Source: Epithemia pelagica
Lineage: Eukaryota > Protista > Bacillariophyta
Assembly: GCA_946965045.2 (NCBI GenBank)
Contig: OX337233.1
Location: 2,108,001-2,172,000 of the forward strand
DNA length: 64,000 bases
Direction of reading: 5' to 3'
Below the pieces are notes generated by a model that was given only the letters and a program-made list of their open reading frames with translations, was not told the origin of the DNA and searched no databases. Position numbers and translations under genes: made by a program. Positions 1 through 45,583 of this stretch are shown here, one piece after another (the first letter of the stretch is position 1; the number at the start of each line of letters is the position of its first letter).

Positions 1-444
1 GAGTGGAAGAAGGAGTGGACGCCGTAAACGAGAGCACCTTATCGAATCTTGACACTCTTACTGGATGGTGAAACAACAATAAACAAAGACAAAGACAAAT
101 GGATCGATGCAGGCAAAAGACAGGATGGTGAACGAGGATGGATGGACGAAACGATTGCCTACGAGTATGACATATACAAGTATGTACAAAGCTAACTAGT
201 ACATGCTCTCACTCAATTAGTCATGTTCATACAAGTAGAGGAGGCGGGTTGATTGCTGTTGTGTTAGAGCCTCCTCGCCATGGTGTGTGTGAGGATAGTT
301 TGCATATCTTGAGATTGAGCATCTCATTGATCGGTCGGTCCATGTGAGGGATGAGGGGCAATTCATCTTAGTTTTTTACTTCGGGAAAATGTATAAAGTG
401 AATCTCGTTGGGCCGAAATTCCCTCTAAAGTTGAAAGTTTATCC

Positions 445-483
445 GAAAGTCTGTCATGAAAGTCTGTCATGAAAGTCTGTCAT
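445..483. repeat. Perfect tandem repeat, 3 x 13 bp (GAAAGTCTGTCAT)
   Basis: Units at 445-457, 458-470 and 471-483, about 80 bp upstream of the ATG at 563. Confidence 0.9.
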
Positions 484-562
484 TTCACTCCCCTCACGAA
501 TTAAAGCATATCTTTCGACTCGAGGTTCGAAGTGTCAAAGTGCAAGAAGACAATCGGCAACC

Positions 563-3500
563 ATGGGTAATGCTTCTGTCTCTGAACTTAATGGTACCAT
601 GCAAGAAGAATCCTCGGGAACCCCAAACGACCGTGATGGAGAAAGTATGGCTACGAAAACCACAACCGCTGCAGCTATGGAGCATGCTTCGTTCTCATCA
701 AATACTGGGGCGACCGAGAAGTCGGAAGCTCTCAATGGCGAGGCAATGGGGGAAAATGCGGGAGGACCATTAATCACGAAAAATGGCTCTCAGTCCATCG
801 ATAATGTTACCGTGGACGACAAGGTAGAAACAATGGCAACAGCAGAAGATGTTGTCACTGAAAAATCCCAGGACAAAGCCCCCGAATCTTCTTATCCAAC
901 GGAAGCACAGACTGAATCCAACAGTGCAATGGAATTGGATAAAGGAGAGCACTTGGTAAAATCGTCTGAAGAAAATTCCAATGGAAAGGCATTCAGTAGT
1001 GGCACTGAGGGGGGAACCGCAGATCAATCGGCTTCTCAAGATCCAACGGATACTCGTTGCAAGTCTTACGATCCACAAAAGATGGAAGTGCATGCGGAAC
1101 AAAACCCAGGACCATCGTGTGAAGGCATACTCAATGGAGAACCGGGTGTTATTGCAGATCAAGAAAAGAAGTCAGACGAGTCTTCGTCGCAAAATCCATC
1201 CCAGGACGGGAAGTACGAAGTGAATAACAATCAGTCGAAGGATCTTCCATCCAATGAAGCGATGGATATCGACGAGACAGAACTGAAAGAAAAGACTCCA
1301 AATTCGCCGGAAGATAAAGGATCACCTCGCACTTCTGGTGACAACGGTGGCTCAGAGAATCAGGCGAATTCAGGTGACGCCGACTGCAATCCTACCATGA
1401 AGTATCCCGTTTTCACAGTCGTGTACAAGGTCAGTAGTCTTGGTTTTCTGCCTATCTCTGTATTGCTCCGATAGGTCTTGTTAATCGTTTGGTTTTGATA
1501 CAGGCCTTTGGTGATGAACACTATTTTGGCTTCGTGGAAACTATTTTAGATGAAGAAAAATGGTATAGCGTTCGGTATGAAGACAATGATGTTGAAGATC
1601 TCGACGAAGATGAGATGGATAAGATTGCGGTGACGTTTGAAGAGGGGGAAATTGCACTCATCTCGCCTCTTGATGAAGAAAACACGAAAACCAGACTAGT
1701 TGACCGTTTGACCAAAGGGACAGCGGACATTGTCAACTATGACAAACGCTTCAAGAATTTGAATTACGATTCTTTGGCTCGATACATTGAAAAACGTAAA
1801 GCGCAAGAGCTTGGGGCTCAAGAACAGGACGCAGAGCCCGAAAAGCACGAAAGCGAGGCTTGGTCCCCTGCGTGGGAACTCGGGGATGTAGTTTGTAAGG
1901 TACGTGGGTCATGTGGTTTGGAGCAGCATTGACGAAAGCTGGAGTTCTCTGATTGCTTCGATTTTCTTTCTATCAGTTTTTCCCTCCCAACTGGTTCTTT
2001 GGTTACATAGGTAGGATCGATAGGTCCGAAAAGCTGTATGGGATACTCTATCAGGACGGAGACAAGGAAGAACTCTTGGAAAAAGATGTAACCGACATAT
2101 TGGTCAGGACAGACAACGGTATTGTTGTCACGACATCTCAGAAACCAGAAGAGGTGTCGGCGGAGGAATGGAAGAAAGAGGTAATGCTTAACGATTCAGC
2201 ACAGGAAACCTTCTCGATTCTGTCGGACGAAATGTATAGTCATCTTGACCGCGATTTTCTTCGCAGGTTCCTCCGGAACAAAGAGGGAGAATCGGGACGA
2301 AGAAAAAGCCGGCGACGCACAACCTCAGTATCACCTCAACGACCAAAAAATCGGCGCCGGCAAAGTGCAACCTCGCTTTCACCCAAACCATCGAAACGAA
2401 CGAGAATTCCTCCCCCAGCCTTTCGTCGAACAAGTTACATGCCAATCACAAAGTCGTTTTTTGACAAGACTGGGAAAATCAATCAACAAGTTTGTGAGTT
2501 TTTCAAGTTTATGCACGAGCGACAATCCATGTGGGTGCGGATCAACGGCAATAATCTCCTTCCTGGGGCACCGGGAAGTGGGCGAGAATATGTCACTACT
2601 CATGACGAAGTTTTGTCAACATACAGCTTTTGCAATGTTTACCGAGAACTTGATCGGGGAACGGCTTATTTTCATGCCCACATCTTGAAGCTGAGAGAAG
2701 GCAAAAAAGAATGGACCGATCTTGAATGGTTAGAACAGGTGCTTTGGGCTGCGCTTGTGTACCGGCCCTTGAACAAAATTGAAACATTCTCCGAGATTGG
2801 AGTTCCAACAATCGAGGAGGCGGACGCATTCGTCGAGAGAGCAGAGACATATAAGCAGAGTGGAAGAACATTTTTTACGAGTGCGCACCAAACAGGGCCG
2901 TTTCAAAATTACTTGCAACATGTCAAATCTTTATCGCAAGAGAACAGAATACACGACAAGGCGGTCGAACTCATTGAAGCTCGGGATACTATGCATTGCA
3001 TAAATATCCTGAAATCAATTCAATCGATTGGTTCCTTCTTTGCGTGGCAGATCTATTGCGATTTACGCGAATCCGGTTGCCTTGTTCAACATAGAGATGA
3101 TCAGTTTTGCTGTTTGGGCCCAGGGGCGATAAGTAAGTTCTTTCTATATGGGAAGGGCTCATCCATGAGATTTTAACATGACTCATATCTTATTTCATGG
3201 CATTTACAGAAGGTCTTGATATTATTTTTCCAGGGGCAACGGACTACATGGAAGCGGCAAGTTCCATAGTTGAACATCAAATTGAGGCATTTGCTCAAGA
3301 GAACTTGAATTTCCCGTTTTGGAATGGGCGGAAGTTGACGATCAAAGAGATTGAACATAGCCTGTGCGAGTATTCCAAGTATACCGCATGCAAAAAGAGC
3401 AAAATGACACACTTCCGTTATTACGAGACACGTTCTTATCTCGACAACGAGAAGCCTTGTCATATCTGCAAAGAAGAAAAAGAAGACGGGCAGTTGTGTG

Positions 3501-3928
3501 AAACTTGTCTCTGTTTCTATTGCACAGATTGTGTTCCCGTCGTATCTTCTTCGATCTCATGGATATGCAGCCGCTGTGTTGCTTTTGATGCTCAGTTTTG
3601 TGCTCCCATGGCAACTCTATCGTCCAACGACCAAATGACAGTGGGTGGAGAAGTCAAAATGGCATCATGCGTCGACGCTAACACAGAGCTTCAACCTACA
3701 CTGTCCCATGCGTCCGGCGATAGCCAGCCCCTTGGTGAAGAGGACCCTGTCATCTTGGATGTCACAGAAAATGAAGAGGAATTGGCTCCAAAATCTCGTG
3801 AAAAGAAGAATCCTACGGACGATATCAGCGCCAGCATTTCAAAGACCGAAACGGAAAGCAAATCCCTTCTAATGGGAAATTATGGCATCGGAAATGCTGG
3901 TGACGAAGAGATCGACGCATGCGTTTAA
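563..3928 (+). CDS. Four-exon chromatin protein: acidic disordered N-terminus, 2 Tudor-like domains, basic region, aGPT-Pplase1 (5-hmdU DNA kinase helical-domain family) domain, PHD/ADD-like finger
   Basis: Exons 563-1429, 1504-1899, 1977-3132 and 3210-3928, joined by GT-AG introns of 74, 77 and 77 nt that keep the frame (VYK|AFG, VCK|FFP, GAI-K|GL). Motifs: FFKFMHERQ, DEVLSTYSFCNVYRELDRGT, YRPLNKIETF, GSFFAWQIYCDL, GPGAIKGL, EHSLCEYSKY. Tudor-like: YSVRYEDNDVEDL, YGILYQDGDKEEL. Finger: CHIC-CETC-FYCTDC-WICSRC. Confidence 0.8.
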
Positions 3929-4383
3929 ACTATGAGACGCAAATCATTATTATCATGTTGGGGGAAACCTTTCTCGGAGCCGTTTGTTTCCGTGATAGAA
4001 AACTAGTAGTTGAACGAACTGTGAAATGAAACGTACCGCTTCCACAGCGAAGCATTTGTAATCTTAGTCAGAAATGGTTACGCAATGTGGTTTGGAGGTT
4101 CAATTATGTTGAATAGTTGCTCCACTAGACTACCCTTCTCCTCTAGAGGACCTCTTTTAGGCAACGAGAGTTCGTAGGTAGTCGGAAGACCTGGGTCATC
4201 GACCGATGTGCGACCGCCATTAATCGGATTTATGTCCCCCCTCATCTTCTCTCCTCACTCTGTGTCCCTGCTTTTATCCAAAAAAGACTCTCTCGGTCGT
4301 GGGATCACACCGGTGCAAGAGCGTCATTGAGAGCCGACACCATTGGTACAGTGGACTGACGGCCGTTGAGAGAACGAGGTAGA

Positions 4384-5894
4384 ATGATGTCCCCAACGAA
4401 TGGACACGGAGATGATGACAAGGGCCCTCGTATCAACGATACGAATGCCAACGAAATGTTAGCCATGGAAATGGAATCCTTACACCCTGGATCCACAACT
4501 GTCCGGAAGCAACAAACAAAACAGGCCCATGTTTTATCCCAACTATGGATATTGATTAAACTCCACATTGAGAGTTATCCAAAGATATTTTCCGTCGTGG
4601 GCTTGGTTGGACTGGCCCTCTTTATGTACATTGTCGTGGAGTGGAGCAAACCACCACTCGCTCGGCACAAGTTTACGGAAGATTATTCCACCGTTCAAGC
4701 GGATTATGATTTCAAAGCAACCCAAATTGATAAGTGGTGCCTTTTTGTAAGTTACCGCCAGCTTCATTTCAATGTAGAGTTTTTTCTTTCGTTTCTGATA
4801 CTTCATCTGTCAACCGGATTGCTCGCATCGGAACTTTCTTCGTTCCATTTCTTGCCTCAAACCAGGGTAACGACGACGCATGTTCTTGTGAAGACTTTTC
4901 AGAACCGATATCGAGAGAAGAGATTCCGGGGTGGATGGCGTCTCATGAAGCCAATAAAGCACGCTTTAAACCTGGTGTTGAATATGATGTTGTTTTTCTG
5001 GGGGACGATGTGATCGAAGAAATGAACGGAACCTGGCTCAACCGTCCAGCTCCATCAGGGTCTACGATTGCGGATGATTTTAAGAAAGTATTTAGTAGTG
5101 ACCTAGGTGGAGATCTCGAGGGAGTGGCCCTCGGTATTGTGGGTGATTCGGTACGTTTAGCTCTTTCGACACATTAACGAAATTCCACCCGGTGCCTCTC
5201 ACATCGAACATTTTGGCTCATTTGATCATGGCTAAAGAGTGCTAACTTGCTTTGGCGTATCAATCATGGAGAGGTCCCAGACGATGTAACTGCAAAAGTT
5301 TGGTGGATTTCCATTGGTTCCAACGATTTTGCTCGTGGAGGGTGTTCCGAGGAGGCCACAGTTCTTGGAATTTTGCACGTTGCAGAGACTATTGCAGGTC
5401 GCTTTCCAGAGGATCGAGTGGTAATTCAAGGAATACTACCACGTTCCATGAATGGTGATGGGTACCTATCACCTGTGTATACGAGCTCTTCGGGTGGGAA
5501 GCATTTCTTCGGCAAGCGCCAGAAGGACAGCTTCTATGCAGATGAGGCACGAAAGAACCAGCAACTGTGGCCCTCAATTCAACACGTCAACCGCGAGTTG
5601 ATGGAGTTCTGCAAAAAACATGCCACAATCGTGTATGTGGATGTGAACGCTTTGTTTGTCGGCAGTGTGGCCAATGCCCTGTACAAGAGCAAATCAGTAC
5701 AGATTGTATCAGAGCTCATGCCTCGGTACGATGGGCGATTGAGCCTTCAAGGACACAAAAAACTACATAAGGTCATACTTGACGAACTTTATGAAATCAT
5801 TGAGGAGGAAAATGATGCCAACGATGTTGTGGATAAAGATGGCAACGATATGGTCAACCAAGACACGAATGAGATTGACGAGGGAGCAACATAA
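4384..5894 (+). CDS. Type II membrane SGNH/GDSL-fold protein (PAF-acetylhydrolase-Ib-like), probably catalytically degenerate
   Basis: Predicted exons 4384-4746, 4866-5150 and 5238-5894. TM segment IFSVVGLVGLALFMYIVV. Blocks VVFLGDD, GIVGDS-SANLLWRI, ISIGSNDF, VIQGILPR. Confidence 0.7.
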
Positions 5895-6116
5895 TGAGAA
5901 TTTCTTTCTCAGACTTATGCAAATTTTATTGTGATGAGATATGTTGCTTGGCACGCTTCGACAAAAAATGCAAGAAATAACGAGAAAATGGAACTTAACA
6001 AACCCCATTGGATGTCCGATAACGATCTAGGCAAGAAAATGACCGATAGGCCAAATGAAGGCAAGGAAGGGCAACCACATACTCAGTAGATCAAGTATTT
6101 CTGGTTTGGTTACATA

Positions 6117-6844
6117 TTACACATCTTTGTATTCCGGATACCTGGCCTTGAAAGTCTCTTCCGTTACGTTGCTAACGGGCTTTTCGTTCTCATCCCAGTT
6201 TTTCTTGTTCATCTCGCAATACTGACCATATCCAATTCCTGTCATTAAGATGCCCAGAGCTGCGCCAACTGCGCAAGCGTAATCAATACGTCGAGTCAAA
6301 CCTCCAATCATGGTGCCCGCTACAAGTCCACCAGCTCCATTGTTCCACCAGGGGTTCTCTTTACCTTCAACTCCACGGATAGTTTCCGTAATAAGTTCCA
6401 CACCAGCGTACGTTGCTGATATTCCTGCGCAAACTGCCATGGGACGCATGAAAAAACGAAAAGTCCAACTCCAATTCTCAATACGTTCAACATGGGGCAC
6501 CACCACGCCCTTGTGGCCAAACAAATACATATCTTGGTAGAAATAAAGGTAAGCTCCCGCATAGGCCGCTCCATAAATAGCTCCTTGCGACTGGATGGTG
6601 AATGAAGGGATCTGCGGTGAGGAATCCATCAGTGTATCCACAAGGCACTACTAAACCATGCACTCACCGCAGCCGACCCAACGCGTACAAAGGGTGTCTG
6701 ACTGAATCGATCTATGCCACTCCACAAAGTAAGACGAAGATGTGGATCAGGCTCTTTGTTGAAGGGATCTCCAGGCACTCGTTGAACAGGCCTGTCAACC
6801 GACTGAGCTCTCATTACATCGATATCATCGCCGGGTTTCGCCAT
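6117..6844 (-). CDS. Tim17/Tim22-family membrane protein, NDUFA11 (complex I B14.7)-like
   Basis: Exons 6844-6668 and 6590-6117 with a 77-nt GTGAGT...CCAG intron. Glycine-rich TM helices (GAIYGAAYAG, AGISATYAGVE, NNGAGGLVAGTMIGG). Confidence 0.65.
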
Positions 6845-8699
6845 GGTTGATGTCTTCTGATCGGTGTCCCCGATCTCTGATCTCCCATGCGTGTGCGAGT
6901 ACTGATGGTTACAGTGTTGCAGTCTGTACAATCTCTCGCTATCCCTCGGTATCAGTGTCCACTGCTTAGCTGTTTTTTGTCTGTGCCACCTTCACAGGTT
7001 CCCAAGTGGACACAGCCAGCATTTTATGTTTTTCGTCTGTCTGTCTACCCAATAAAATTCCTCAGGGTTGGAGCAAGGCCAGCGTGCATGTGACAGTTGA
7101 CGGTTGGTGGTTGTCCTCTGGTCACCACGATTCAAATTTTTTGGGCAACCCTCCCGTCCTCGTCTGTCACAAAACACCAAAAACCGAGCCAAATGCTTGA
7201 CCATGACGTGAGGTGAGAACAATGGATGCAACATGCTGGGCTGAACCTGAACTGCTTCTCACTTCTCACTACTGTGGCTTATTTCTAATCTTCTTGTTTC
7301 TTTTTCTTTCTTCTCACTCATCACTGCTGCAATCTTTCCTCTTGTTCATGCATGATCCTTTGGCTTGTCTCTTGTTGAACGAGTAGACTAGGAACAAGCC
7401 GCTTGATGTCAACTGGAGTATCTTACCCGTCTCATTTGTTGATGTAGGAGTAATTGTTTTGTTGTTTGATTGTTGGTTGGTTGCTTTCATGTCTTCTGTA
7501 GGATAGATGATTCACTATCGTCACAGGTTGTAGCATCATCTCATTTCTCAATGACCGAACACTTTGTTGTTTTTGCTTCAAATAGATGGGAAGCCCTCTT
7601 GCTCTTGCCACACCCTACTTTCCATGTCTATCAGTTCATAGAGTCAAAAGATGTAGCTGTAGCGTGTGAGAGCTGCTTGTGTTCATGGTGAAACTGAGAG
7701 TCATTGCCATGCTCAAAACAGAAAAGAGATCTGCAACGAATTCAGAATGCACTGAACTCTACGAATGAATAGCACTTGAGTTCTATTTCTACTCCTAGTA
7801 TATAAAGAAAACAATGTCTGCAGTCTGTTTATGAATCGAATGAAAGTTATCAAAAATCCGTCATTTCGACATGTAGAATGGCACGTAATGAGCTACCCAG
7901 AGACACAACAGATGATCGCCTCTCTTCCCATGAGCAGAGCAAACAAAAGTGACAAGTGTCAGTGATCAGTGAGCATGAGCTATGTAATTGTCATGGCAAT
8001 TGGCAACGGATCACACTCACCTGGAATGCCATTCGTACGACGTGCTTCGGCAACAAGAGAAAAGAATTGTGTGCTTGTCATTATGAATTATGGAGCAACC
8101 AGCAGTTATCCACGCACGGCCGCTTGCTGGGCATGCGTCTGTTTCAAACTGTGAAAACTCCAGCTGGGTATGCGTGCCAATTTGCCATTTGATCATTTCT
8201 ATTTGTCTCAAAAGCAAAAAATGATGTCTGTGTCCACCTGGGAACCTAAAATGATGGCACAGACAAAAAACAGCTAAGCAGTGGACACTGATACCGAGGG
8301 TTCATTTGGATAGTTTGACGATGGGTCGTTAATCGTTTACATGACATGTGTTTGCAACCACCGCTGGGGCACAGATTCCGGTTTCAATGGATGTTGATGG
8401 ATAGTCCACATAGCTGCCGTACCTCCATTACTAGCTAGGAGTAGAGAGGAGTAGGAGTACTCCTAGTAGAAGTAATACATTGGTAATGCGATAGATACAA
8501 TGTCGGAGGCTCCCATGTAGTTTTTTTCTGGTACATTGCTTTGATCGCTTTCGGTATCGGGGGTTGCGGCCTGTAAACCTGCGTCAAGGTGCTTAACGTC
8601 AGGCTATGCGAGCAATAAACATGTTTCAGAAACATCTAAGACACAACGTAGATACGAAATTACAAATTACGCTGTTTCCAATACTTTTGGGATAGGGAG

Positions 8700-10040
8700 T
8701 TAGTCTATTCTCAAAGACTGTAATGCCTCAATGTAGGCCTTGTCAATACTCTCGCTGTCGATAATATCTCCATTTAAACCTGAAGTATCGTCCTCCAGCC
8801 ATGAGGAACCTGTCACGATTGGATCAAAGACACGATGTGGCTTGTACGGCGGTACCTTGCTGTTCCAAAAGGCTTTATCTACAGGTCGACTGTATTCGTC
8901 CCAGGGGATGACAACCAATATATCGCGCAAACTCCGTTCCACAACATCCAAACAAAACAAAGCTTCGTATGGCTCCAAGACTCCTACCAACGAATCAAGT
9001 TCATCGAGAGCCTCTTGGGCATCGGCCAAGGCATTGCATTGACCGGCTCCCCCTCTCCACGCACAGGAGCCCCAATCAAAGCCCACAGCCTCATCAATGG
9101 ATCGTAATCGACTGGCCGCTAATTCTAAATTGGACCATGGTGCGGAGGACAAGGTACTTTGAACGGCTTCCCATTGGTAGCTTTGTACCTTATCCTTGAG
9201 TGTGAACAATAGCGAGTCCAAACATTCACACAGGGTATGAATGGCATCTGCAAGATCAACTTTAGATGCCTCTGACATGACGGACACATCAACTTTATGA
9301 TCGGTTCGCCATTGCGGTACACGAATGGAACGGTGATAGAGCAGGACTTCGTTGTAGGAAGGACGAGGAGGCAGTTGCAGTTGCAGTTGCTGTGACTCTG
9401 GAAGATGTTTCTTCTTGGCGTTCGATTCAGCCAAGATGGGGGACTTACCCTCCATCAGCAGCCGATCTTCTCGTCCAAACCCCATACCTCGCACTGTGAC
9501 TTGGCCCCATCCATTCCACAATGCTTGTCCTGGACCAGAGTCCGCTTCTCCTTCCCTTTTTTGATCCTGTTCTAGCTGCATGACCATGGTGCGTGTCTGC
9601 CTCGAAGGTAAGACCATATCACATTGTGTTTCTTCCCATGCGATAAGCATCAGAGCCAAAAGAAACGAGTGTAAGGCAAATCGAATAACGGATACAAGAG
9701 AGTTTGTCGAAAGCCACTTTTCGGCCGAGGATGGAGAAGATGATGACGACAATGGAGATGGAAGGTCATGAATGCGGACTTGACCCTCAGATTCAGGGAA
9801 TGTCTTGCTGCTTTCCAATCGACCTTGTCGATAGTTTCCGGTAGCATCAAAAATTCGTATCCGCGTCAGGGTCGACCTTGTGCCACAGCAAAAACCAGAA
9901 ATGCCCCTCCTGGACTGGTGGTGCTTCCATGATGAATGGCCGTGAGAAAATGACCCGAGACAATACTTGAGCTGGAAATATAACACAACGATAATAATGC
10001 CTGACACAAGACTTTTCGTAGATGTTCCCGTTTGGTTCAT
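8700..10040 (-). CDS. Hypothetical protein with an N-terminal signal/transit-like segment (possibly plastid)
   Basis: Uninterrupted 446-aa ATG ORF with a hydrophobic N-terminus. Conserved-looking C-terminal block GFDWGSCAWR...ALADAQEALDEL. No family assigned. Confidence 0.6.
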   Translation of the reverse strand: MNQTGTSTKSLVSGIIIVVLYFQLKYCLGSFSHGHSSWKHHQSRRGISGFCCGTRSTLTRIRIFDATGNYRQGRLESSKTFPESEGQVRIHDLPSPLSSSSSPSSAEKWLSTNSLVSVIRFALHSFLLALMLIAWEETQCDMVLPSRQTRTMVMQLEQDQKREGEADSGPGQALWNGWGQVTVRGMGFGREDRLLMEGKSPILAESNAKKKHLPESQQLQLQLPPRPSYNEVLLYHRSIRVPQWRTDHKVDVSVMSEASKVDLADAIHTLCECLDSLLFTLKDKVQSYQWEAVQSTLSSAPWSNLELAASRLRSIDEAVGFDWGSCAWRGGAGQCNALADAQEALDELDSLVGVLEPYEALFCLDVVERSLRDILVVIPWDEYSRPVDKAFWNSKVPPYKPHRVFDPIVTGSSWLEDDTSGLNGDIIDSESIDKAYIEALQSLRID

Positions 10041-10371
10041 GGTGATGAATAAGGTTCTCCGAGAGCACTATGAGATCTGATAAGATCTTTGTGACATCAC
10101 TCTGATGCGTGATTGACATGCCGGAGTCACGAATACTCAGCTTGAACATTTGCTTTTTCCAGAACTTTTATAAGAATTCGTTCTTGAAAAGAGAGAACTT
10201 CCAAACGTACAGAACCGATGGGAAAAGAAGAAGATACGTGGCGGGACAGAATCTCCATTCGGATTTGTGATCACATGGTCGACTTCGAAGTCAATCAACT
10301 TCTTGCTGTCATTTGTACGACGAAACAGATTCTTTCGACCCATTTGAATACATCCTTCCATCTATTGAAAT

Positions 10372-11310
10372 ATGAGGGGCACTTATTTGCTGATAGTGGC
10401 GTTTTGGTGGAGCTTGAGCTACGGTTTCAGGACTATTCTTGCTTTCAACAACGTCGTGCCTCAACTCACCATGCCTCATTCATTTTCCGATTCTCGTCAC
10501 ATGAAATTTCCAAAGGTCCATTTCTCTTTGCGGTCACAAATGGATGCTGACAACGAGGAGACCGAAACTGATGGCTATATGGTGGCGAAAAGGGAAAATA
10601 CCATTCCCATGAAACGGTTGTTGCTTCTCTTGTCGGAAACACCTCCAAACCAAGCCACTCCAAAGCCGCTGACCGAGCAAATTCTGACACAAGTTCGGGT
10701 GTTGGAAAAGTCTTGTCCCACAGAGTCCAGTCAAGTCATACGTAAGCTAGCCGGGACGTGGGAACTTGTGTGGACATCTCAGGATGACTCGACGAAGGAA
10801 GCCAATCGAGGACCTTTCTCCTGGATCAATCCACTCGAAAATCAATCCTATTCCATCAACAACAGCAAAAACATTATGGGCCAGTCCAACCCAGTTTTAC
10901 CCCTTGTAATTCAGCAAGGCCTGGAAGCGGCAGGTGTTTTGGACACTCCAACCACGAGCAGTGCATCGTCGCGACCTCGGAGTTTGAATCGTCCAGTCAG
11001 CACACAATCGATTGATCTCAAGAAGCAACTGGCCACCAATGTGGTGTCACTCCGTGTTTGGGACAAGTTTACCATGTCCTTGGCTGTCAAGATTGGTATT
11101 CGCCCCAATGCGAACGATGCACGGCGTATTGATGTCCAGTTTTTGAGTTGTCGGGTCAATGTTCCATCGGCCAATGTGGACTGGGACATACCCCTCGGAT
11201 TTGGCCTGGAGGGATGGTTGCGAACCACATACATTGATGACACTCTCCGAATCACACGAGGACACAAGGGATCGGTCTTTGTCTTGACCAGACCCGGACG
11301 CTTGACATGA
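10372..11310 (+). CDS. Plastid lipid-associated protein / fibrillin (PAP_fibrillin)
   Basis: Signal peptide ending SYG-F, LAGTWELVWTS, and C-terminal GWLRTTYIDDTLRITRGHKGSVFVL. Confidence 0.85.
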   Translation: MRGTYLLIVAFWWSLSYGFRTILAFNNVVPQLTMPHSFSDSRHMKFPKVHFSLRSQMDADNEETETDGYMVAKRENTIPMKRLLLLLSETPPNQATPKPLTEQILTQVRVLEKSCPTESSQVIRKLAGTWELVWTSQDDSTKEANRGPFSWINPLENQSYSINNSKNIMGQSNPVLPLVIQQGLEAAGVLDTPTTSSASSRPRSLNRPVSTQSIDLKKQLATNVVSLRVWDKFTMSLAVKIGIRPNANDARRIDVQFLSCRVNVPSANVDWDIPLGFGLEGWLRTTYIDDTLRITRGHKGSVFVLTRPGRLT

Positions 11311-20860: not shown

Positions 20861-23800
20861 CATGGCCCCGATACACCTTCCTTCTTTTCCATCTATGCTG
20901 ATCAAGATGGCAACGACCCCACACTTCATGCGTCTGTCCACAAACTCTACAAGGAACAATACGACTGGAAGAAATTTCGCCCTTTCTTTGGGTGGCAATC
21001 GGAAGACGTAATCGCCGATACGTTCAAGCATGCAACTCGTCATGGACACATTTCCTTTGACCAGGATACCTTGAAGAAACACTTTAAGGCCCGGAATCCT
21101 ATCCTTAACCTCCCACGACGGCATGAACCCGTTGCCACTGACTCCATCTTCTCCGACACCCCGGCTGTTAACCATGGTGGCAAGATTGCTCAGATTTTTG
21201 TTGGTCGTGATACTTTGGTTACTGACATTTATGGTATCAAGTCTACCAAGCAATTCGTCAATACCCTCCAGGATAACATTCGTACACGTGGTGTCATGGA
21301 GACTTTGATCAGTGATGGTGGTTCGTCACTTATTTCCCACAAGGTCAAGGATATTCTTCGCACCCTTCTGATTGGTGAATACCGTTCCGAGCCCTATCAT
21401 CAACACCAGAACAAAGCTGAGAACCGCTATCAGACCGTTAAGCGTATGACCAATGCTATCATGAATGCATCTGGTTGCCCTGCTTCTGCATGGTTACTTT
21501 GTTTAGAATATGTGTGTGACCTCCTCAATCACACTTCCTCTCCCACCCACTCTGGCCGCACCCCTCTTGAGGCTCTTACCGGTACCCCACCCGACATTAC
21601 CCATCTCCTTTTCTTTCCTTTCTGGGATGAGGTCTACTATCGTGTCGACCCTTCTGAACCTACCTCCGGTTCTTACCCTTCGTCTCCCGACGAGAAGATT
21701 GGCCACTGGGTTGGTTTTGCCCACAATGTTGGTGATGCCTTTACTTGGAAGATCCTCACTGCCGACAACGTCATCATCTACCGTTCCGCTGTCCGTCGCG
21801 TTGCCTCCACTACCCCCAACCTTCGTGTGGATATCTCTTCAGGGGAGGAGTCGCCGCATAAACCCACTGACAAGCAAGGTGACACTGTCTTTATTCGCAG
21901 CAGAAGTGAAGACCCATCCACACCTATGCCAACAATTGACTACGACGATTTAGTTGGACGCACATTCCTTTGTGACATTGAAGAAAATGGGGAGCGCCAC
22001 CGAGCACGAGTAATCAAACGAGTTGTCGACCTGGAACAAGATGCAACCAAACAAGAAGATCGACTCAAATATATCTTTCGCAAGTCTAACTCCAATGTTG
22101 ATGAGATGATCTCCTACAACCAGCTCATGGAATACATTGAAAGGGATAATCAAGCCCAAACGACAGGGGATAGTCTCTTCCGATTCAGAGACGTTATTGC
22201 ACACCAAGGACCTCTGAACTCAAGCGACCCAGACTATAAAGGGAGTAAATATAATGTCCTTGTTGATTGGGAGACTGGGGAGACGACATACGAACCTCTA
22301 TCTCTTATTGCAAATGATGACCCCATCACAGTCGCCATCTATGCCAAGAAAAATGGTTTGCTGGATCTACCTGGATGGAAACATCTCAAGCGATACGTCA
22401 AGACAAGCAAAAGACTCATTCGAGCAGCTAAACAATCCAGGATCAAACAAGTTCGTCGTTCTATCAAGTACAAGTTTGGTTTCCAAGTACCTCGCACCTA
22501 TGAAGAAGCAGTGGAACTAGACAAGCAATTTGGGAACACGAAATGGCAAGACGCAACAGAATTGGAACTCTCACAGATCCAATCGTATAACACTTTCAAG
22601 GACCATGGAAAAGCCAAGCTCATTAATGGAAAATTGGCCAATGCACCAGAAGGATATCATAAGATAAGAGTACATCTGGTCTTTGATGTCAAGCATGACG
22701 GAAGGCATAAGGCACGACTTGTCGCAGATGGACATCTCACCAAGGAACCCGTTGAGACCATCTATTCAGGGGTTGTCTCCATTCGCAACCTTCGCATTGC
22801 CATATTTCTTGGAACCATGAACGACATGGAAATATGGGGAGCAGATATTGGGAACGCATACCTAGAAGCATTGACAGGAGAGAAGATTTTCATCATTGCA
22901 GGACCAGAGTTCAAGGAGTTAGAAGGACATATCTTGATCATCTACAAGGCATTATATGGTCTCAAATCCTCAGGTGCTCGCTGGCATGACAAACTGTTTG
23001 ATGTTCTCATTGATATGGGATTTTCTCCAAGCAAGGCTGACCCTGATATTTGGATGAAGAAGGCTCCTGGAGAAGACTGTTATGAATATATCGCTGTATA
23101 TGTTGATGACTTAGCTATCGTTGCCATGGACCCTGAAGCTGTCTGCAAGATCTTTACAGAAAAATACAACTTCAAACTCAAAGGAGTCGGACCTATTGAG
23201 TATCACTTGGGGTGTCGTTATACCAAAGATCCAGACGGTACACTTGTGTCTGACCCACGAAGGTACATCGAGAAGATGATGGATACCTATGAACGATTGT
23301 TCAATGAGAAACCCAAGAAAGCAAAGCCGCCAGTCATTGCTAACGATCATCCTGAACTCGATGACTCTGAGCTCTTAGATGAAGAAGGGACCCAGCATTT
23401 CCAGACTCTTATTGGACAACTGCAATGGCTAATTACCATTGGCCGTTTTGATGTCTTTCCTGCTACCATGACTCTATCAAGGTTCAGAGCTGCTCCAAGG
23501 ATTGGTCATTTGAAGCGAGCTAAGCGCATCTATGGATACCTCATGTCATTTCCTGATGGGTCTATCAGATTCCGCACTGGGGAGCCAGATTTATCAGCTT
23601 TACCTATCCAAGAATACGATTGGAGTCGTACCGTATACATGGACGCCAAGGAACGTATCCCTGAGGACTGTCCAACCCCACTTGGGCGTTTTGTGACAAC
23701 TATACATTATGTCGACGCAAATCTCATGCATGATATGGTTACTGGGAAAGCAGTTACAGCCATCCTGCATTTTGTAAATGGTACACCCGTGGACTGGTAC

Positions 23801-24226
23801 AGTAAGCGACAAGCCACAGTGGAGACAGCCACGTATGGATCTGAATTTGTTGCCGCAAGGACTGCAGTTGATCAGATCACGGAGCTACGCCTTACACTCC
23901 GATACTTGGGAGTCCCTCTACGAGAGAAGAGTTATATGTTTGGAGATAACCGCTCTGTCGTTATCAATAGCACCGCACCACACTCAATCATCTCCAAGAG
24001 GCACCATCTCCTATCCTATCACCGAGTCCGTGAAGCTATCGCTGCAAAGTACGTCGCATTCTACTGGAAAGATGGAAAGACAAACCCAGCCGATATCCTC
24101 AGTAAACATTGGGAATTCGCCGCAGTTTGGCCCATGCTCAGATCTTTGTTATTCTGGAGAGGAAAAATCCAGGAAAGTGATGAGGGAATTGACAATCCTC
24201 ATTCGACGAATTGTGGGGAGTGTTAG
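20852..24226 (+). CDS. Copia Pol fragment (IN, chromo-like segment, RT, RNase H)
   Basis: FRPFFGW, VATDSIFSDTP, ISDGG, NKAENRY (integrase). VFDVKHDGRHKARLVADG, ADIGNAYLEA, ALYGLKSSG, YVDDL (RT). YVDAN, TYGSEF, GDN, NPADILSK (RNase H). Confidence 0.92.
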   Translation, partial: QHIHGPDTPSFFSIYADQDGNDPTLHASVHKLYKEQYDWKKFRPFFGWQSEDVIADTFKHATRHGHISFDQDTLKKHFKARNPILNLPRRHEPVATDSIFSDTPAVNHGGKIAQIFVGRDTLVTDIYGIKSTKQFVNTLQDNIRTRGVMETLISDGGSSLISHKVKDILRTLLIGEYRSEPYHQHQNKAENRYQTVKRMTNAIMNASGCPASAWLLCLEYVCDLLNHTSSPTHSGRTPLEALTGTPPDITHLLFFPFWDEVYYRVDPSEPTSGSYPSSPDEKIGHWVGFAHNVGDAFTWKILTADNVIIYRSAVRRVASTTPNLRVDISSGEESPHKPTDKQGDTVFIRSRSEDPSTPMPTIDYDDLVGRTFLCDIEENGERHRARVIKRVVDLEQDATKQEDRLKYIFRKSNSNVDEMISYNQLMEYIERDNQAQTTGDSLFRFRDVIAHQGPLNSSDPDYKGSKYNVLVDWETGETTYEPLSLIANDDPITVAIYAKKNGLLDLPGWKHLKRYVKTSKRLIRAAKQSRIKQVRRSIKYKFGFQVPRTYEEAVELDKQFGNTKWQDATELELSQIQSYNTFKDHGKAKLINGKLANAPEGYHKIRVHLVFDVKHDGRHKARLVADGHLTKEPVETIYSGVVSIRNLRIAIFLGTMNDMEIWGADIGNAYLEALTGEKIFIIAGPEFKELEGHILIIYKALYGLKSSGARWHDKLFDVLIDMGFSPSKADPDIWMKKAPGEDCYEYIAVYVDDLAIVAMDPEAVCKIFTEKYNFKLKGVGPIEYHLGCRYTKDPDGTLVSDPRRYIEKMMDTYERLFNEKPKKAKPPVIANDHPELDDSELLDEEGTQHFQTLIGQLQWLITIGRFDVFPATMTLSRFRAAPRIGHLKRAKRIYGYLMSFPDGSIRFRTGEPDLSALPIQEYDWSRTVYMDAKERIPEDCPTPLGRFVTTIHYVDANLMHDMVTGKAVTAILHFVNGTPVDWYSKRQATVETATYGSEFVAARTAVDQITELRLTLRYLGVPLREKSYMFGDNRSVVINSTAPHSIISKRHHLLSYHRVREAIAAKYVAFYWKDGKTNPADILSKHWEFAAVWPMLRSLLFWRGKIQESDEGIDNPHSTNCGEC

Positions 24227-36319: not shown

Positions 36320-39300
36320 ATGTCATCCCACAAATTACAGCCCATTTATGCGGCCTTGGACAACCATCAATTTAGCCGTGCCATCAAATTGTGTCTAGCC
36401 CTTCCACCATCCTTTACGATTGGACAAGCCCTGTTGGCGCATGCCTATGCCAAGTCCACCCAACGATACAAGGCCTTGCGAGTACTACAAAGTATATTGG
36501 GTACACAGGGCTTTCCGGAATTGCAATTGGAAGTCAAATATGCCTTGGAACGACGACAAGATGTGACTGGTACCACCGGTACCACGATGTCCACTACTGG
36601 AGTGGCATCCAGCAGCACCAACAACTCTGCTTCGTCTGCATCCGCTAGTACAAGTGCTACTACCAGCAAGGGTGGAAAAAAGGGAAAAAAGAAACCTACT
36701 GCCAAACCATCCTCTCCTACCTCACCCTCAGGTCCATCCAATAGCACTAGCAGTGGTTCTTCTGCCGCGGCAACGGCATCAGCAACCAGTGTGGATCAGG
36801 ACCTCCACGATTTTGACTGGATGGATCAACTCGAGTGCCCACCCCTGGTACCAGACAATTGGGAGGAGGCTATACCACCCGCCAGTGGTCCTCCTCCTCC
36901 TTCCGATCATACCTTGTTGGGGACTCTCAGTATGACCTTATCGTCCCTGCGACTTCAACTGACTGCCTACCAATTGTATACGTGGGTCATTGCCACTCAT
37001 TCCAATGACGTGGTGTTGGTCAAGAAAACCTACCTCTTGGGATTGACCGTGTGGATTGCGCCCCATTACCAATCGTTGGCCGTCAAGTTGTTGGGACAAT
37101 TGCAAGTTACAGCCTTGCAATTGGCACGCTTGCAACATGGAGCCATGGGCACCAGTCCGGCCACTGCCTGGGCTGCACAAACGGCACTCTGGCAATTGGA
37201 TCCTTCCCTCTCCATGACAATACCCATGGACGAAAAGAAACGTGCTACCTTGCTTCGATTGGCCGAATCCTTGGCGGCCAAGTGTTTGACCATGACATCG
37301 CAAGATCATGTTTTGGAAACCGAACACTTTATGTTGTACATGAAAACCTTGGATGGACAAGCCAAGTGGGAGGGAAAACTAGAGGTGCTGCAACAACGTT
37401 TGGACCAGCAAGAGAGCGTACCGCATCCACGCCCAACCGTCTTGCGAGAACTCAAGGTATCCTGCCTTGCTGCCTTGGGTCGATATGAAGAGGCACAGGA
37501 GGAACTCGCACAATTGTTGCACAGTCAGCCAGATCATTGGGAGTATTGGAAATTGTATCTTCACAATCGAAATCGCTCTTGGAACTCAGACAAGGACAAC
37601 GACAATGCCTTGGAATCACTCGTGGAACAAGTCACTCAACCACCACCAATGCCAAACGAGGAAACAGCAGAGGGCGAAATCGCGGAGACGTCATCCTCCT
37701 CGTATCCATTAAGAGGACCGCATTTGGCTAAAATCGAATGGGAACGAATGCAATGGCAAAACCACTCCGAAAACCCTTCGAGTGGGTCGTCTTCGACGAG
37801 TGCCATTGTGGACGAAATCATCCAATACGGAACCCTTTTCGCTCAGCGAACCTTGTGTACCTTCACTGATATTTCCACCTACTTGGACAGTGTGTTCGAA
37901 AAACGAGACAATGAAGAAGCTGACAGTCGTATGCGAGACGATGCAATTCGCATTTTGACATGGATTCGTTCCTCGTTCCGACCTGTACCAGATAGTTCCG
38001 ATCCCAGTGAACGAAGAAAGCAACTACGAGGGTATACCTTTGGAGTACAAGTATCGTACAAGGTTCTGCACCAATTCCCCGATTTGGAAGAAGAATGGCT
38101 GCCACATTGGCACGAAATTGTCACTGTTTGGAAAGATTTTCAAGCATTTGAAGATATACAACAAGCGCAAAAGGAAAATCGGGCGGCCGATGACTTGATC
38201 TTATTGGCCGTGCAACAAATTGCACGCAGCAGCAAGGACGACAGTACTATCGCCCAGGTTCCTCGGGACCGACTGTTTTTGGCCGCCGCCATTCTAGAGG
38301 TGGCCATTGCGTATTCGCCACACAATGCCTACCTGAAAATTGCGGGGATTGATATTTACCGGTCGCTTCATTCAGTCAGGCGAGCGTTTGACTTGTTTCG
38401 ACAAATCTACGTCAAACACATTCAACACGAGTCTTGTGCCTACATTATTCTGCCTGTCCTTCGTGAAGGAGGTTTCTACCAAGAAACCATCTCAGTATGT
38501 CAAGAAATCCTCCGACTCCAAACGTCGTCCATACGGGATACGGCAGAGTTTACTGGCCGAGCCATGGACTTTGGTACATTGGAAAAAGCTAGTGAATTCA
38601 TAATGTTTCAAAGAGAACGAATGAACAAGAGTTTAACCACGTTGGAAGCAAAAGGCTTGATTTTGGACTGCGCCCCCATGTTTCAATTTGAAGAGGATCA
38701 GGGACTTGGGGCAGTCCATGGTATTGTGGGAGGACCGGAGGATCACGGTCGCGTCTGCAAAATGATTGCCGAAGCACACAATCCACATGCGGCCTTTAGT
38801 CTCTTGAGATTGCGAGGGAGTGCCGAGGACAATATCGAGCTCTTTACAGAAAATCGCGATTTTGATATCTTATCCTTTAATATATTATCGCCACCCAAGC
38901 TACCGTCGCGACAAGAAATTTTGGGAGAAGCCATCCGAAGGCGGCACCACCACAGCATGTTGATTCGGGCATCACTTTGTCTCGAAGCGACCAAGGGACC
39001 AAAAAAAGGAAAGGTCACCAAGCCATCAGACATTATGTCCAAACGGTGCTCTAGTTTGCTTGCTTGTGTTCAAGATTCACAGGAGTATATCAGCAGCGGG
39101 TGTTTGCAATCTGAACTTGCCCAAACGTCCATGAGTACCATGGTTTGGTTGTGCCGTACCATTCTCGCTGTCAGTGCGGGTGTTGGGGATGACGAAAAGA
39201 AGAGCGGGACGCCCGATAGCTTAGAATCTCGTGAAGCAGCCGCCACCCGGTTCCTCGAGAAGGCTGTAGAAGCCACCAAGCAAAGCCAGTCGGTTTTTCT

Positions 39301-39697
39301 CGCCACATTCACAGAAAACCCCGTGCCAGTAGTGAGTCGTTATGTGGCCGACTGCCTTGTATCTATCTTTGCCCTCTTCCAGATGTGTGCAACGGTGTTC
39401 GAGCTTTATGGATGGGGGAAACGAAAACGGAGCACACGACAATCGGCAGCTGCTCTCGCTACCCTGGCACTGGCACTAAAGGACATGATTGAGCAAATGC
39501 GGTCCAGTATGGATGTCCTTCCCACCGAACTTGATCCAGGTGTTCACCAGGGAAAGATCGACCATGTATTGGACCAAGCCGAGTTAGAAACTCTTGTGGC
39601 GAGAATCACCACCGACCAGATGGAATCAAAAGGACGGATCGTTTCAATTCTGTCAAGCATGATGGTTAAGTTTTACAGTTTTGATGTTGCGGTTTAA
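36320..39697 (+). CDS. NAA25: NatB N-terminal acetyltransferase auxiliary subunit (MDM20)
   Basis: LQPIYAALDNHQFSRAIK, a TPR-like helical body, SPHNAYLKI, VKHIQHES. Intronless, 1125 aa. Confidence 0.85.
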   Translation: MSSHKLQPIYAALDNHQFSRAIKLCLALPPSFTIGQALLAHAYAKSTQRYKALRVLQSILGTQGFPELQLEVKYALERRQDVTGTTGTTMSTTGVASSSTNNSASSASASTSATTSKGGKKGKKKPTAKPSSPTSPSGPSNSTSSGSSAAATASATSVDQDLHDFDWMDQLECPPLVPDNWEEAIPPASGPPPPSDHTLLGTLSMTLSSLRLQLTAYQLYTWVIATHSNDVVLVKKTYLLGLTVWIAPHYQSLAVKLLGQLQVTALQLARLQHGAMGTSPATAWAAQTALWQLDPSLSMTIPMDEKKRATLLRLAESLAAKCLTMTSQDHVLETEHFMLYMKTLDGQAKWEGKLEVLQQRLDQQESVPHPRPTVLRELKVSCLAALGRYEEAQEELAQLLHSQPDHWEYWKLYLHNRNRSWNSDKDNDNALESLVEQVTQPPPMPNEETAEGEIAETSSSSYPLRGPHLAKIEWERMQWQNHSENPSSGSSSTSAIVDEIIQYGTLFAQRTLCTFTDISTYLDSVFEKRDNEEADSRMRDDAIRILTWIRSSFRPVPDSSDPSERRKQLRGYTFGVQVSYKVLHQFPDLEEEWLPHWHEIVTVWKDFQAFEDIQQAQKENRAADDLILLAVQQIARSSKDDSTIAQVPRDRLFLAAAILEVAIAYSPHNAYLKIAGIDIYRSLHSVRRAFDLFRQIYVKHIQHESCAYIILPVLREGGFYQETISVCQEILRLQTSSIRDTAEFTGRAMDFGTLEKASEFIMFQRERMNKSLTTLEAKGLILDCAPMFQFEEDQGLGAVHGIVGGPEDHGRVCKMIAEAHNPHAAFSLLRLRGSAEDNIELFTENRDFDILSFNILSPPKLPSRQEILGEAIRRRHHHSMLIRASLCLEATKGPKKGKVTKPSDIMSKRCSSLLACVQDSQEYISSGCLQSELAQTSMSTMVWLCRTILAVSAGVGDDEKKSGTPDSLESREAAATRFLEKAVEATKQSQSVFLATFTENPVPVVSRYVADCLVSIFALFQMCATVFELYGWGKRKRSTRQSAAALATLALALKDMIEQMRSSMDVLPTELDPGVHQGKIDHVLDQAELETLVARITTDQMESKGRIVSILSSMMVKFYSFDVAV

Positions 39698-44500: not shown

Positions 44501-45583
44501 ACTTTCATGCGGCACTTCTTCTTCGTTTGGTATCACATGCACCATTTTTTCCGTATCGAATAAAAAATCTGTCGTCAATGGCGTGTCTCGATGTGGAAAG
44601 TATTGCTCGTTGTGTTCGTCATCCATGTCCGTCCGGTCCTCGAGACTCCCTTCGTCGTCACTTGTTCTTGGTACGTTGCCTTCCTGTGTGGCGTCGTCAT
44701 CATCTTCGATCACATTTGCCTCACTAACAATTGGTGGATTGTTGTCATCTTCACAGATTTTACAACAAAAGCTTTGGTAGTGGGTCATTCCGGTGGCCGT
44801 GGAGAACTCTCCCACATTGGTGCCTCGCCGATTCAACGGAATCGTTCGTTTGCTCGTTCCTTGGTTCCATTCCAGGGTAATTGTGTCGTCAGTGGTGATA
44901 CATCGGGTGCCATGCGGCTTCGGTCGGTGATCTCGTGCCACTTGTGCCCAGTGTTGCGGGGAAAGGAGTCGATGTGACGTGGATGGAATATAGAATGACC
45001 CGGGGAGCACAATGCGGTATACTTGCCCATCGTCGTCTTCAATGTCCCATTTGATCGTCGTGGAGTACACCTCGGTCTTGTATAATCCAGCAATTCCCTT
45101 TATTTTGCGTTGAATTGGTGTTGGAGATGTTAGGCAATCGGTGATATCGTGGGTGATTGATGCTGTGGCACAGTTGTCGATGAAGAGAGGTTTACTGTCC
45201 GAGTCAAATCGGACCGAATGCGCCTTGACCAGTTTGCTTGCCACCGGAGCTGCAAGTATCGTGGTCATGCATAGTCCTTTCATGAGGCTCGAGTTCCACT
45301 GTTTTCGTCGTCTCCTGGTTGCTGGCGATCTTGGCCTTGGTCTATATCTGGGTGGTGGAATGGCTGCATCAAGTATTGCCAGGCTGTTGGCCATCATGGT
45401 CGCTATCGTGGTCCATAAATAGTCGATCCATCTTGCATTCGTGGCTGGAGCAGTAGTAGTTGGAGCTTCATCATCATAACCTACTAGGACATACAAGTAA
45501 AGAGTTGTAGTCGCTAGTAAGATATAGATGAGCTGTTCGAAAGTCTTGGTGAACAGCCCGAGGAGTGACCTCGGGTCTGGTTG
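41561..45583 (-). CDS. Copia Pol (protease, integrase, RT, RNase H), in frame with gag behind a single UGA
   Basis: FIDNCAT (protease). HHRLGH...CTAC, VSVDQL, HADNG, MAERR (integrase). WKSRLAFDG, YTDD (RT). YADAD, TEAE, TADIFTK (RNase H). The listed start at 45496 is TTG, and the frame is open back to the gag stop. Confidence 0.93.
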   Translation of the reverse strand, partial: QPDPRSLLGLFTKTFEQLIYILLATTTLYLYVLVGYDDEAPTTTAPATNARWIDYLWTTIATMMANSLAILDAAIPPPRYRPRPRSPATRRRRKQWNSSLMKGLCMTTILAAPVASKLVKAHSVRFDSDSKPLFIDNCATASITHDITDCLTSPTPIQRKIKGIAGLYKTEVYSTTIKWDIEDDDGQVYRIVLPGSFYIPSTSHRLLSPQHWAQVARDHRPKPHGTRCITTDDTITLEWNQGTSKRTIPLNRRGTNVGEFSTATGMTHYQSFCCKICEDDNNPPIVSEANVIEDDDDATQEGNVPRTSDDEGSLEDRTDMDDEHNEQYFPHRDTPLTTDFLFDTEKMVHVIPNEEEVPHESPTAELLRIHHRLGHLSMAKIQTMARQGALPRRLGSCAVPACTACLYGKATKKPWRVKGSQGTLDTMTRPGQCVSVDQLISNTPGYIAHMRGTPTRERYRVATVFVDHFSGIGYVHLQRSTSATDTIEAKERFESGVAIQHYHADNGIFADNEFRKAVASKGQRLTFSGVNAHFQSGMAERRIRDLQDSARTMLLHAHRRWPTAITTNLWPYAVRYASDMFNEAPLKKHKDKTPIELFSGSPVRFNVRNAHTFGCPSYVLDNELQAGKGLPKWSERSRVGIFLGYSAQHARTVGLILSLSSGLSSPQFHVHYDDNFETIRRSFGEAQPISYWQQRAGFSKRTSGTARPKRAKAINLDAPMREVDNNEEIVDQDQATPTRDDEGDAVPNIPVHEGAGLRRSQREPRPTTRYQEYMAELGDDINPLGELAIALPGIVSMTAQAQKNPDVMYWHEAMQQPDRHEFIKAAQKEVRDHTENGLWEIVRRKDIPPGSYITRAVWSCMRKRRLETGEIYKWKSRLAFDGSGQTKGVNYWETYAPVVQWPVVRYVLTTALAQGWAIKQVDYVLAYTQAMAETDMYMEAPKAFTFDTKGEQKAEDYVLKIWRNYYGQKQAARVWNKHLVQQLEKAGFTQSSHDECLFYHGQSIYILYTDDSILTGPDPEELNRIIAKLEEIGLKMTYEDGVEDFLGVHITKQESGQMHLSQTRLIDSILDDLRLPEDAQGKDIPAASTVKMRSDDDGDPFDGHFHYRSVIGKLNFLEKSTRPDISYAVHQCARFAANPKQIHGRAVKQIGRYLASTRTLGILLNPQEDANFDVYADADFCGNFNKTDMPRTDMARSRTGYIIFYGGCPIVWASKLQTEIALSTTEAEIISLSTSLRTVIPLMHITKEMKTRGYKVISTQPRVHCRAFEGNNGAFELATVHKYRPRTRYLCTKLFHFKEYVEQKLITILPCDTELQTADIFTKALDKDTFERHRKSIMGW

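Follow-up and report, generated by a model that had tools for sequence, protein, structure and literature searches.

What does a domain of phage type do in a spliced diatom nuclear gene, where it is joined to chromatin-reading modules? The question is raised by a gene at positions 563–3928 (plus strand) of a 64,000-nucleotide stretch of DNA from Epithemia pelagica (contig OX337233.1, positions 2,108,001 to 2,172,000), hereafter the window, meaning the whole stretch analyzed. The gene product carries a PF18723 domain between two Tudor units and a PHD-type finger. The reading given a somewhat better than even chance is that this protein is a chromatin-tethered DNA-base-modifying enzyme, which would flip out a pyrimidine and use Cys859 to activate its C5 substituent. 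What was observed directly is the gene structure with its splicing, the identities of the domains, the fold (in a model of an ortholog from Epithemia clementina), and the conservation of the motifs.

The spliced gene and its PF18723 domain

The coding sequence is composed of four exons in an uninterrupted frame of 1045 codons, which are separated by three GT..AG introns and encode, on the plus strand, a protein of 1045 amino acids. Its start and stop coincide exactly with the boundaries proposed for the gene in a preliminary description of this DNA. Contigs of four public sequencing runs were aligned to window positions 400–4100. Run X5 gave a single contig of 3270 nucleotides (nt), which covers 528–4025 and skips exactly 1430–1503, 1900–1976, and 3133–3209, thus joining the four exons at precisely the introns that had been predicted. 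The library type of X5 has no record, and the contig was read as complementary DNA because the three canonical introns are absent from it. The unspliced form was found in runs X2 and X3 of the same organism and the same study. In addition, a 235-nt contig of a metatranscriptome RNA run, labeled 'subsurface metagenome', corresponds to the 3′ end of the gene (window 3805–4039) with one letter different. The gene is real, expressed, and nuclear. The full-length protein encoded by the gene was itself not present in the protein collection as far as a search showed. As a separate observation, the 235-nt contig hints at the presence of the source organism, or a very close relative, in the 'subsurface metagenome' sample. 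The segments of the gene are as follows.

528–4025, plus strand: transcript, minimum extent, with a 5′ untranslated region of at least 35 nt and a 3′ untranslated region of at least 97 nt (from the spliced X5 contig)
563–1429, plus strand: exon 1, beginning with ATG; acidic Ser/Thr-rich N-terminus (amino acids 1–279), then the first strand of Tudor unit 1; donor AAG/GTCAGT; joint seen in the contig
1430–1503, plus strand: intron 1, 74 nt, phase 0, within Tudor unit 1 after VVYK
1504–1899, plus strand: exon 2 (from the frame and the spliced contig)
1900–1976, plus strand: intron 2, 77 nt, phase 0, in Tudor unit 2 after VVCK
1977–3132, plus strand: exon 3 (from the frame and the spliced contig)
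3133–3209, plus strand: intron 3, 77 nt, phase 1, within the Lys codon of GPGAIKGL
3210–3928, plus strand: exon 4 (from the frame and the spliced contig)

The protein is organized, from the N-terminus, as an acidic disordered region, two Tudor units of about 105 amino acids each (PF21743), a linker rich in Arg, Lys, and Ser, the PF18723 domain, a PHD-type finger, and an acidic tail.

1400–1791, plus strand: Tudor unit 1 (amino acids 280–385), a barrel with a conserved helical extension (GTADIV..Y..L....YIEKR), from PF21743, the repeat alignment, and the Tudor fold in the ortholog model
1870–2276, plus strand: Tudor unit 2 (amino acids 412–521), from PF21743 on the exon-3 piece and a local hidden Markov model (E = 3e-52)
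2277–2453, plus strand: Arg/Lys/Ser-rich linker (amino acids 522–580)
2496–3397, plus strand: PF18723 domain (aGPT-Pplase clade 1, or HMUDK_hel; helix-hairpin-helix glycosylase-like), amino acids 595–869, broken by intron 3
3353–3370, plus strand: EHSLCE motif (amino acids 855–860), with the predicted nucleophile Cys859 (TGC, 3365–3367), Glu855/His856, and Glu860
3455–3574, plus strand: PHD-type zinc finger (amino acids 889–928) of the C4-C-C3 type, from the Cys pattern, profile matches, and the ortholog model
3578–3928, plus strand: C-terminal tail and stop, 116 amino acids, acidic (20% Asp plus Glu) and of low complexity, with no conservation in the ortholog

Exon 3 matched the Pfam profile PF18723 with an E-value of 4.7e-23 and 82.4 bits (profile positions 6–208 of 281), and exon 4 with an E-value of 5.3e-6 and 26.5 bits (positions 225–276 of 281), both above the cut-off of 25. 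The profile continues across intron 3, since the two matches run on, and the assignment to the aGPT-Pplase1 family made in the preliminary description is thereby borne out on both exons. Pfam at present calls this family "5-hmdU DNA kinase, helical domain" (5-hmdU, 5-hydroxymethyldeoxyuridine), and phage records annotate the same family as aGPT-Pplase clade 1; the earlier name is therefore equivalent to the present Pfam name. The match in the phage family library was phrog_2396, to which no function is assigned there. PF18724, the profile of the clade-2 amino-acid:DNA transferases (AADT), gave no match on the window protein at E-values up to 1.

The full series of motifs listed at the outset for this domain was found in the spliced protein, namely HERQ (601–604), YSFCNVYRELDRGT (637–650), YRPLNKIETF (683–692), GSFFAWQIYCDL (773–784), GPGAIKGL (802–809, its K codon spanning intron 3), and EHSLCEYSKY. 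In comparison with 76 homologs, all 39 positions with at least 85% conservation in the family, including those of EHxLCE, are kept in the window protein. The GPG triplet, Asp783, and Glu786 are invariant, and the two acidic residues follow a hairpin-like GxFxAWQ segment.

Fold, predicted active site, and phage context

When exon 3 was used as the query against 1.84 billion cluster representatives, 674 proteins were obtained at E ≤ 0.001. The best full-length match, P0002 (1090 amino acids) of the diatom E. clementina, has the same architecture and is 45% identical to the window protein over residues 246–932. It was taken as the positional ortholog because its neighborhood is collinear with the window over at least five genes (window 1489–11295 against L002 10676–22366, E. 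clementina contig JBGMNV010000408.1); an upstream Metallophos gene is also common to both.

The structure described here is a model of P0002 (residues 515–880) made with a 76-sequence alignment. The model of the ortholog domain and finger reached a predicted local distance difference test score (pLDDT) of 92 and a predicted template modeling score of 0.91, and has the helix-hairpin-helix glycosylase-like fold that had been anticipated. In Foldseek, PUGT (PaMx11 gp46; 8z2n, 8z2m) came first at E = 0.026, followed by helix-hairpin-helix glycosylases and QNG1; by Foldseek alone, no solved structure matched the ortholog model at E ≤ 0.001. With a second aligner, the best match was DNA-bound PUGT, 8z2n_B (Z 11.2, root mean square deviation 3.8, 224 residues), followed by QNG1/DUF2419 at a Z of about 9 and by the Ogg, AlkA-like, EndoIII, and MutY glycosylases at Z 5–8.5. 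Searches of solved structures by sequence gave nothing meaningful with exon 3, and with the profile of the 76 homologs reached PHD fingers only and not 8Z2M (PUGT).

In a short local alignment, IKEIEHSLCEY of the window protein aligns with IQEVETILCKW of a PUGT homolog, placing Glu855 and Cys859 opposite Glu243 and Cys247; when the family profile was compared in hhalign with one clade-2 sequence, the alignment was limited to 24 columns around the Cys motif, with a probability of 6.5%. PUGT binds double-stranded DNA with a flipped thymine, which is clamped by Cys247, the proposed covalent nucleophile, while Glu243 and Thr244 hold a metal contacting thymine O4 (PMC11472151). Mutation of the equivalent Cys or Glu in M6 gp51 and ViI gp247 abolished the activity, and trapping experiments with these enzymes favored an exocyclic methylene intermediate (PMC8989533); in a 2026 study, the metal and the E-T pair were essential in another clade-2 enzyme (PMC13458397). 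In the phage clade-1 proteins aligned, the Cys-Glu pair is invariant (six of six) and is preceded by E-H in four and by Q-N in two, E-H being the rule in clade 1. As judged from these alignments, clade 1 appears to keep the nucleophile, with His in place of the metal-binding Thr of clade 2.

The genes surrounding clade 1 in phages point to 5-hydroxymethyluracil (5hmU). The Ab19 cluster encodes an AADT, a flavin adenine dinucleotide-dependent oxidoreductase, an acetyltransferase, a P-loop kinase, the PF18723 protein, and a thymidylate-synthase homolog; the M6 cluster includes gp51 (AADT), gp54 (kinase, PF18748), and gp55 (PF18723); and in YungSlug a kinase, PF18723, and a thymidylate-synthase homolog lie within 5 kb. 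In PhiJL001 (L005 3998–4864), a Microbacterium phage (L006 3791–4660), and a Glutamicibacter phage (L007 3971–4948), PF18723 is located near a thymidylate synthase/hydroxymethylase, with no annotated kinase or AADT near the PF18723 gene, an arrangement from which clade 1 may be thought to act on 5hmU DNA without phosphorylation. QN replaces EH before the Cys in the Microbacterium and Glutamicibacter phage proteins. The same pairing of PF18723 with thymidylate synthase was described in a pelagiphage study (PMC9599517). The link of clade 1 to 5hmU DNA by gene context is strong. The preliminary description had placed the domain in a phage hypermodification family: this context agrees with it, whereas an activity has been shown for clade 2 (AADT, PF18724) only, the clade-1 protein gp55 being dispensable in vitro (PMC8989533), and for clade 1 the term 'hypermodification enzyme' is an inferred one. 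As a side observation, the P-loop 5-hmdU DNA kinases of Ab19 (L003 11047–11616) and M6 (L008 11686–12249) are labeled 'terminase small subunit' in RefSeq, which is likely a mis-annotation.

The structural resemblance to the Ogg, AlkA-like, EndoIII, and MutY glycosylases and to QNG1/DUF2419, together with the invariant Asp783 and Glu786 after the hairpin-like segment, could also be explained by a chromatin-targeted repair glycosylase, which would excise an oxidized or abnormal pyrimidine such as 5hmU and be directed by its reader modules to certain chromatin. This is considered unlikely: the closest structure is that of a transferase, PUGT, the invariant Cys-Glu pair is common to transferases, and the phage family adjoins genes for building 5hmU DNA and not for removing it. 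Still lower is the probability assigned to a non-catalytic reader, in which the domain would only bind a modified or flipped base and recruit other factors through the Tudor and PHD modules. Such a role would suit the dispensability of gp55 in the M6 reconstitution (PMC8989533) and the kinase 'helical domain' of the Pfam name, but the conservation of about 39 positions at 85% or more, with a Cys-Glu pair invariant from phages to diatoms, is a pattern like that of an active site. With the Cys/Glu/His motif intact, an enzyme is therefore favored over a mere reader, and the protein is probably active.

Chromatin-reading modules and relatives

Tudor unit 1 matched PF21743 (PTM/DIR17-like) on exon 2 with an E-value of 1.3e-8 and 34.9 bits (cut-off 27.2), and Tudor unit 2, at the start of exon 3, with an E-value of 1.4e-5 and 25.2 bits as a fragment cut by the intron (same cut-off), while both units of P0002 together scored 72.8 bits. 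In the model of the ortholog Tudor pair (pLDDT 86), two barrels of four to five strands each were formed, which matched the Tudor domains of SETDB1 (best), LBR, MTF2, SMN, and PHF20. With regard to a possible aromatic cage for methyl-lysine or methyl-arginine, conservation was seen of the pattern K.F....F.G.V ... Y.I.Y.DGD.EE, in which 32 sequences agree without exception at the second Tyr and at both Asp residues. The two Tudor-like domains and the basic patch recognized at first inspection are thus both present, the latter as the linker at residues 522–580 with 32% Lys plus Arg and 25% Ser plus Thr, which looks like a nuclear localization signal. In the repeat alignment, introns 1 and 2 occupy the same position of each Tudor unit, both in phase 0. 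This shared position suggests a duplication in which the intron was probably copied along with the unit. Outside these modules, the first 279 amino acids form an acidic low-complexity stretch that is not conserved in the ortholog. A further protein, P0109, was observed to carry six Tudor units and no PF18723 domain.

The finger contains eight conserved Cys residues at PHD spacing, with Cys at the usual His position of C4HC3, and this Cys pattern is kept in 33 rows of the tree described below besides the window protein. The profile of the 76 homologs matched PHD fingers of solved structure (PHF12 at E = 7e-8, then BRD1 and KMT2C/D among others), and the modeled ortholog finger matched those of DPF3 and MOZ at Z 5–6.7. 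The Pfam PHD profile gave no match on the window protein and matched 8 of the 76 homologs at E ≤ 0.001. A single PHD-type finger is favored by these matches; for the PHD/ADD-like finger first proposed, nothing specific to ADD was seen.

Among the 76 homologs scanned, the domain is fused to Tudor in 17, to Pfam PHD in 8, to the methyl-CpG-binding domain MBD in 2, and to chromo in 1; a separate search gave a homolog from Fragilaria crotonensis with a fusion to BAH, and with the local Tudor-unit profile the unit was detected in about 47 of the stored homolog matches. Homologs with named sources belong to Amphora, Fragilaria, Cyclotella, Ditylum, and a pelagophyte, and a short paralog of Phaeodactylum tricornutum (XP_002182813; UniProt B7G6Z2) consists of the domain and the finger only. 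A maximum-likelihood tree was made of 81 domains, five of them from phage proteins. A clade of 73 rows (support 100/92) leaves out these five, and within the tree the window protein forms a pair with that of E. clementina (100/97). Fingers of the PHD type are distributed through two large subclades of the 73-row clade, and the clade that they mark contains none of the five phage proteins.

These fusions bear on the choice of substrate. A substrate other than chromatin DNA, either RNA or a free nucleotide (QNG1 acts on queuosine 5′-monophosphate), is suggested by the similarity to QNG1/DUF2419 (Z of about 9); it is improbable, as the joining to Tudor, PHD, MBD, BAH, and chromo modules and the basic linker indicate chromatin, and the best structural match, PUGT, binds double-stranded DNA with its thymine flipped (PMC11472151). 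That the gene is a viral insertion in decay, or an error of assembly, with no host function is hardly credible. Most annotated members of the family are viral (270 phage records), but this reading was rejected because the transcript contig lacks three spliceosomal introns, the order of at least five genes is shared with E. clementina, the frame is unbroken and retains all motifs, and paralogs occur across diatoms.

Proposed function and known systems

For the chromatin-tethered base-modifying enzyme, the following order of events may be envisaged. The basic linker would bring the protein to the nucleus and to DNA, and the Tudor pair and PHD-type finger would dock it on histone tails by reading histone marks. 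The PF18723 domain would then flip out a pyrimidine of the DNA, and Cys859 would attack its C6, as in the phage amino-acid:DNA transferases, making the C5 substituent reactive. The substrate would most likely be 5hmU, its phosphate ester, or 5-hydroxymethylcytosine (5hmC), of which the C5 group might then be exchanged or removed. The most specific version, by analogy with phages, is that of a writer of hypermodified thymine, which would depend on a source of 5hmU and possibly on a kinase as well. The data fit equally well with an enzyme that erases or converts 5hmU or 5hmC. A wider proposal is put forward more tentatively, as a possibility on the doubtful side: the nuclear DNA of ochrophytes, diatoms included, would carry an undescribed base, the C5 group of thymine or cytosine being rebuilt or removed by Cys-dependent PF18723 enzymes at histone-marked places.

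Several points weigh against an enzyme of this kind. The structure is a model of an ortholog with 45% identity and not of the window protein, and the equivalence with PUGT residues comes from a short local profile alignment (hhalign, 6.5%) and overall collinearity of the fold, not from superposed coordinates. The metal-binding Thr244 of clade 2 corresponds to His856, so that the chemistry may differ. M6 reconstitution lysates without the clade-1 protein gp55 still made the product (PMC8989533), and in the literature search no assignment of an activity to clade 1, of phage or other origin, was found. With respect to partners, when a phage kinase was compared with the sequence collections by a method relying on shared words, no eukaryotic source for the kinase PF18748 was seen among the 120 matches listed of 554; these 120 came from metagenomes, run assemblies, or bacterial genomes. 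Within the 64-kb window there is no gene for a 5-hmdU DNA kinase or a deoxyuridine monophosphate (dUMP) hydroxymethylase; such a neighborhood belongs to the phage context and does not characterize the family, and clustering is not to be expected of eukaryotic genes. Literature text searches gave no report of a modified thymine (5hmU, base J) in diatoms and nothing relevant on TET/JBP or 5hmU in them; the 15 papers matched for 5hmU all concern dinoflagellates as far as titles and abstracts tell, in agreement with the earlier remark that no such modification is characterized in diatoms.

The other genes of the window are ordinary nuclear ones, including those for fibrillin, ankyrin, protein kinase, and GDSL lipase, and two copia elements are also present.

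21071–24223, plus strand: Ty1/copia-type element 1 (RVT_2)
36320–39694, plus strand: NatB non-catalytic subunit
41564–46843, minus strand: Ty1/copia-type element 2 (RVT_2), with separate gag and pol frames
49012–50457, minus strand: piece of pyruvate phosphate dikinase
52479–59018, minus strand: SPT6 homolog, a single frame of 2180 amino acids
61269–63254, minus strand: SDE2-SPRY protein

Three copies of GAAAGTCTGTCAT in tandem, at window 446–484 (and 431–496), lie a short distance upstream of where the transcript starts. In the aligned runs, window 400–523 is covered 20–100 times as deeply as the gene, and many contigs end at position 470 or 495; the region resembles a dispersed repeat.

In 2013, Iyer et al. 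reportedly predicted the PF18723-type family along with its fusions to chromatin domains in eukaryotes, and diatom paralogs are already labeled automatically in databases. That work is cited for homologs in cellular organisms (PMC5889632). To this the present analysis adds a gene model verified with a spliced transcript and an ortholog identified by position. It also describes the duplication of the Tudor unit and the presence of the PHD-type finger as a fixture throughout the clade, provides a high-confidence model for the domain of the ortholog, and maps the catalytic Cys and Glu. The diatom PF18723 proteins constitute a conserved and expressed family, joined to readers of histones and of methylated DNA, in which the catalytic Cys of the phage transferases is kept. 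A possible new eukaryotic DNA modification is thereby made testable, Phaeodactylum having both a paralog and genetic tools. If these proteins are active, a major group of phytoplankton would possess a DNA modification pathway outside 5-methylcytosine/TET and base J, and the enzyme class could serve in the labeling or sequencing of oxidized pyrimidines.

Among known systems, the phage clade-1 proteins (M6 gp55, Ab19 gp13) share with the diatom protein PF18723, the same motif series, and EHxLCE, at 23–29% identity over the whole domain. The phage proteins are, however, of a single domain and stand beside a 5-hmdU DNA kinase and a dUMP hydroxymethylase, whereas the diatom gene contains introns and has no such neighbors, and its product carries a PHD-type finger as well as two Tudor units and falls in a separate clade. 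The AADT of clade 2 (PF18724; PaMx11 gp46/PUGT, 8Z2M/8Z2N; M6 gp51; ViI gp247) provide the best structural match and share E-x-x-x-C, with the catalytic Cys and the metal-binding Glu, and by analogy a similar base flipping with attack at C6 is likely in the diatom protein; they differ in the low identity of about 10%, the lack of a PF18724 match, and the replacement of Thr244 by His, and they need kinase-phosphorylated DNA and an amine donor, neither of which is known for diatoms. The helix-hairpin-helix glycosylases (Ogg, EndoIII, MutY) and QNG1/DUF2419 have in common with it a general helical fold of two lobes, and the glycosylases of solved structure contain a pocket for base flipping; these proteins remain at Z 5–9 and 6–14% identity and do not share the Cys-Glu motif of the family. 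Among the diatom paralogs, P. tricornutum XP_002182813 has the domain and the PHD-type finger, is 43% identical to the exon-3 query, and belongs to the same subclade; it is short, without Tudor units, and carries the automatic name '5-hmdU DNA kinase helical domain-containing protein.'

UHRF1 couples Tudor and PHD histone readers to a chromatin/DNA modifier. In proteins of the UHRF1/SETDB1 type, histone readers are likewise joined to a modifier, and the Tudor domain of SETDB1 was the best match of the Tudor model, although the catalytic partner is unrelated to PF18723. For a hypermodified thymine in eukaryotic chromatin, the precedent is base J of kinetoplastids, which is made via 5hmU by JBP1/2 and a glucosyltransferase (PMC13229309), that is, by enzymes of other families.

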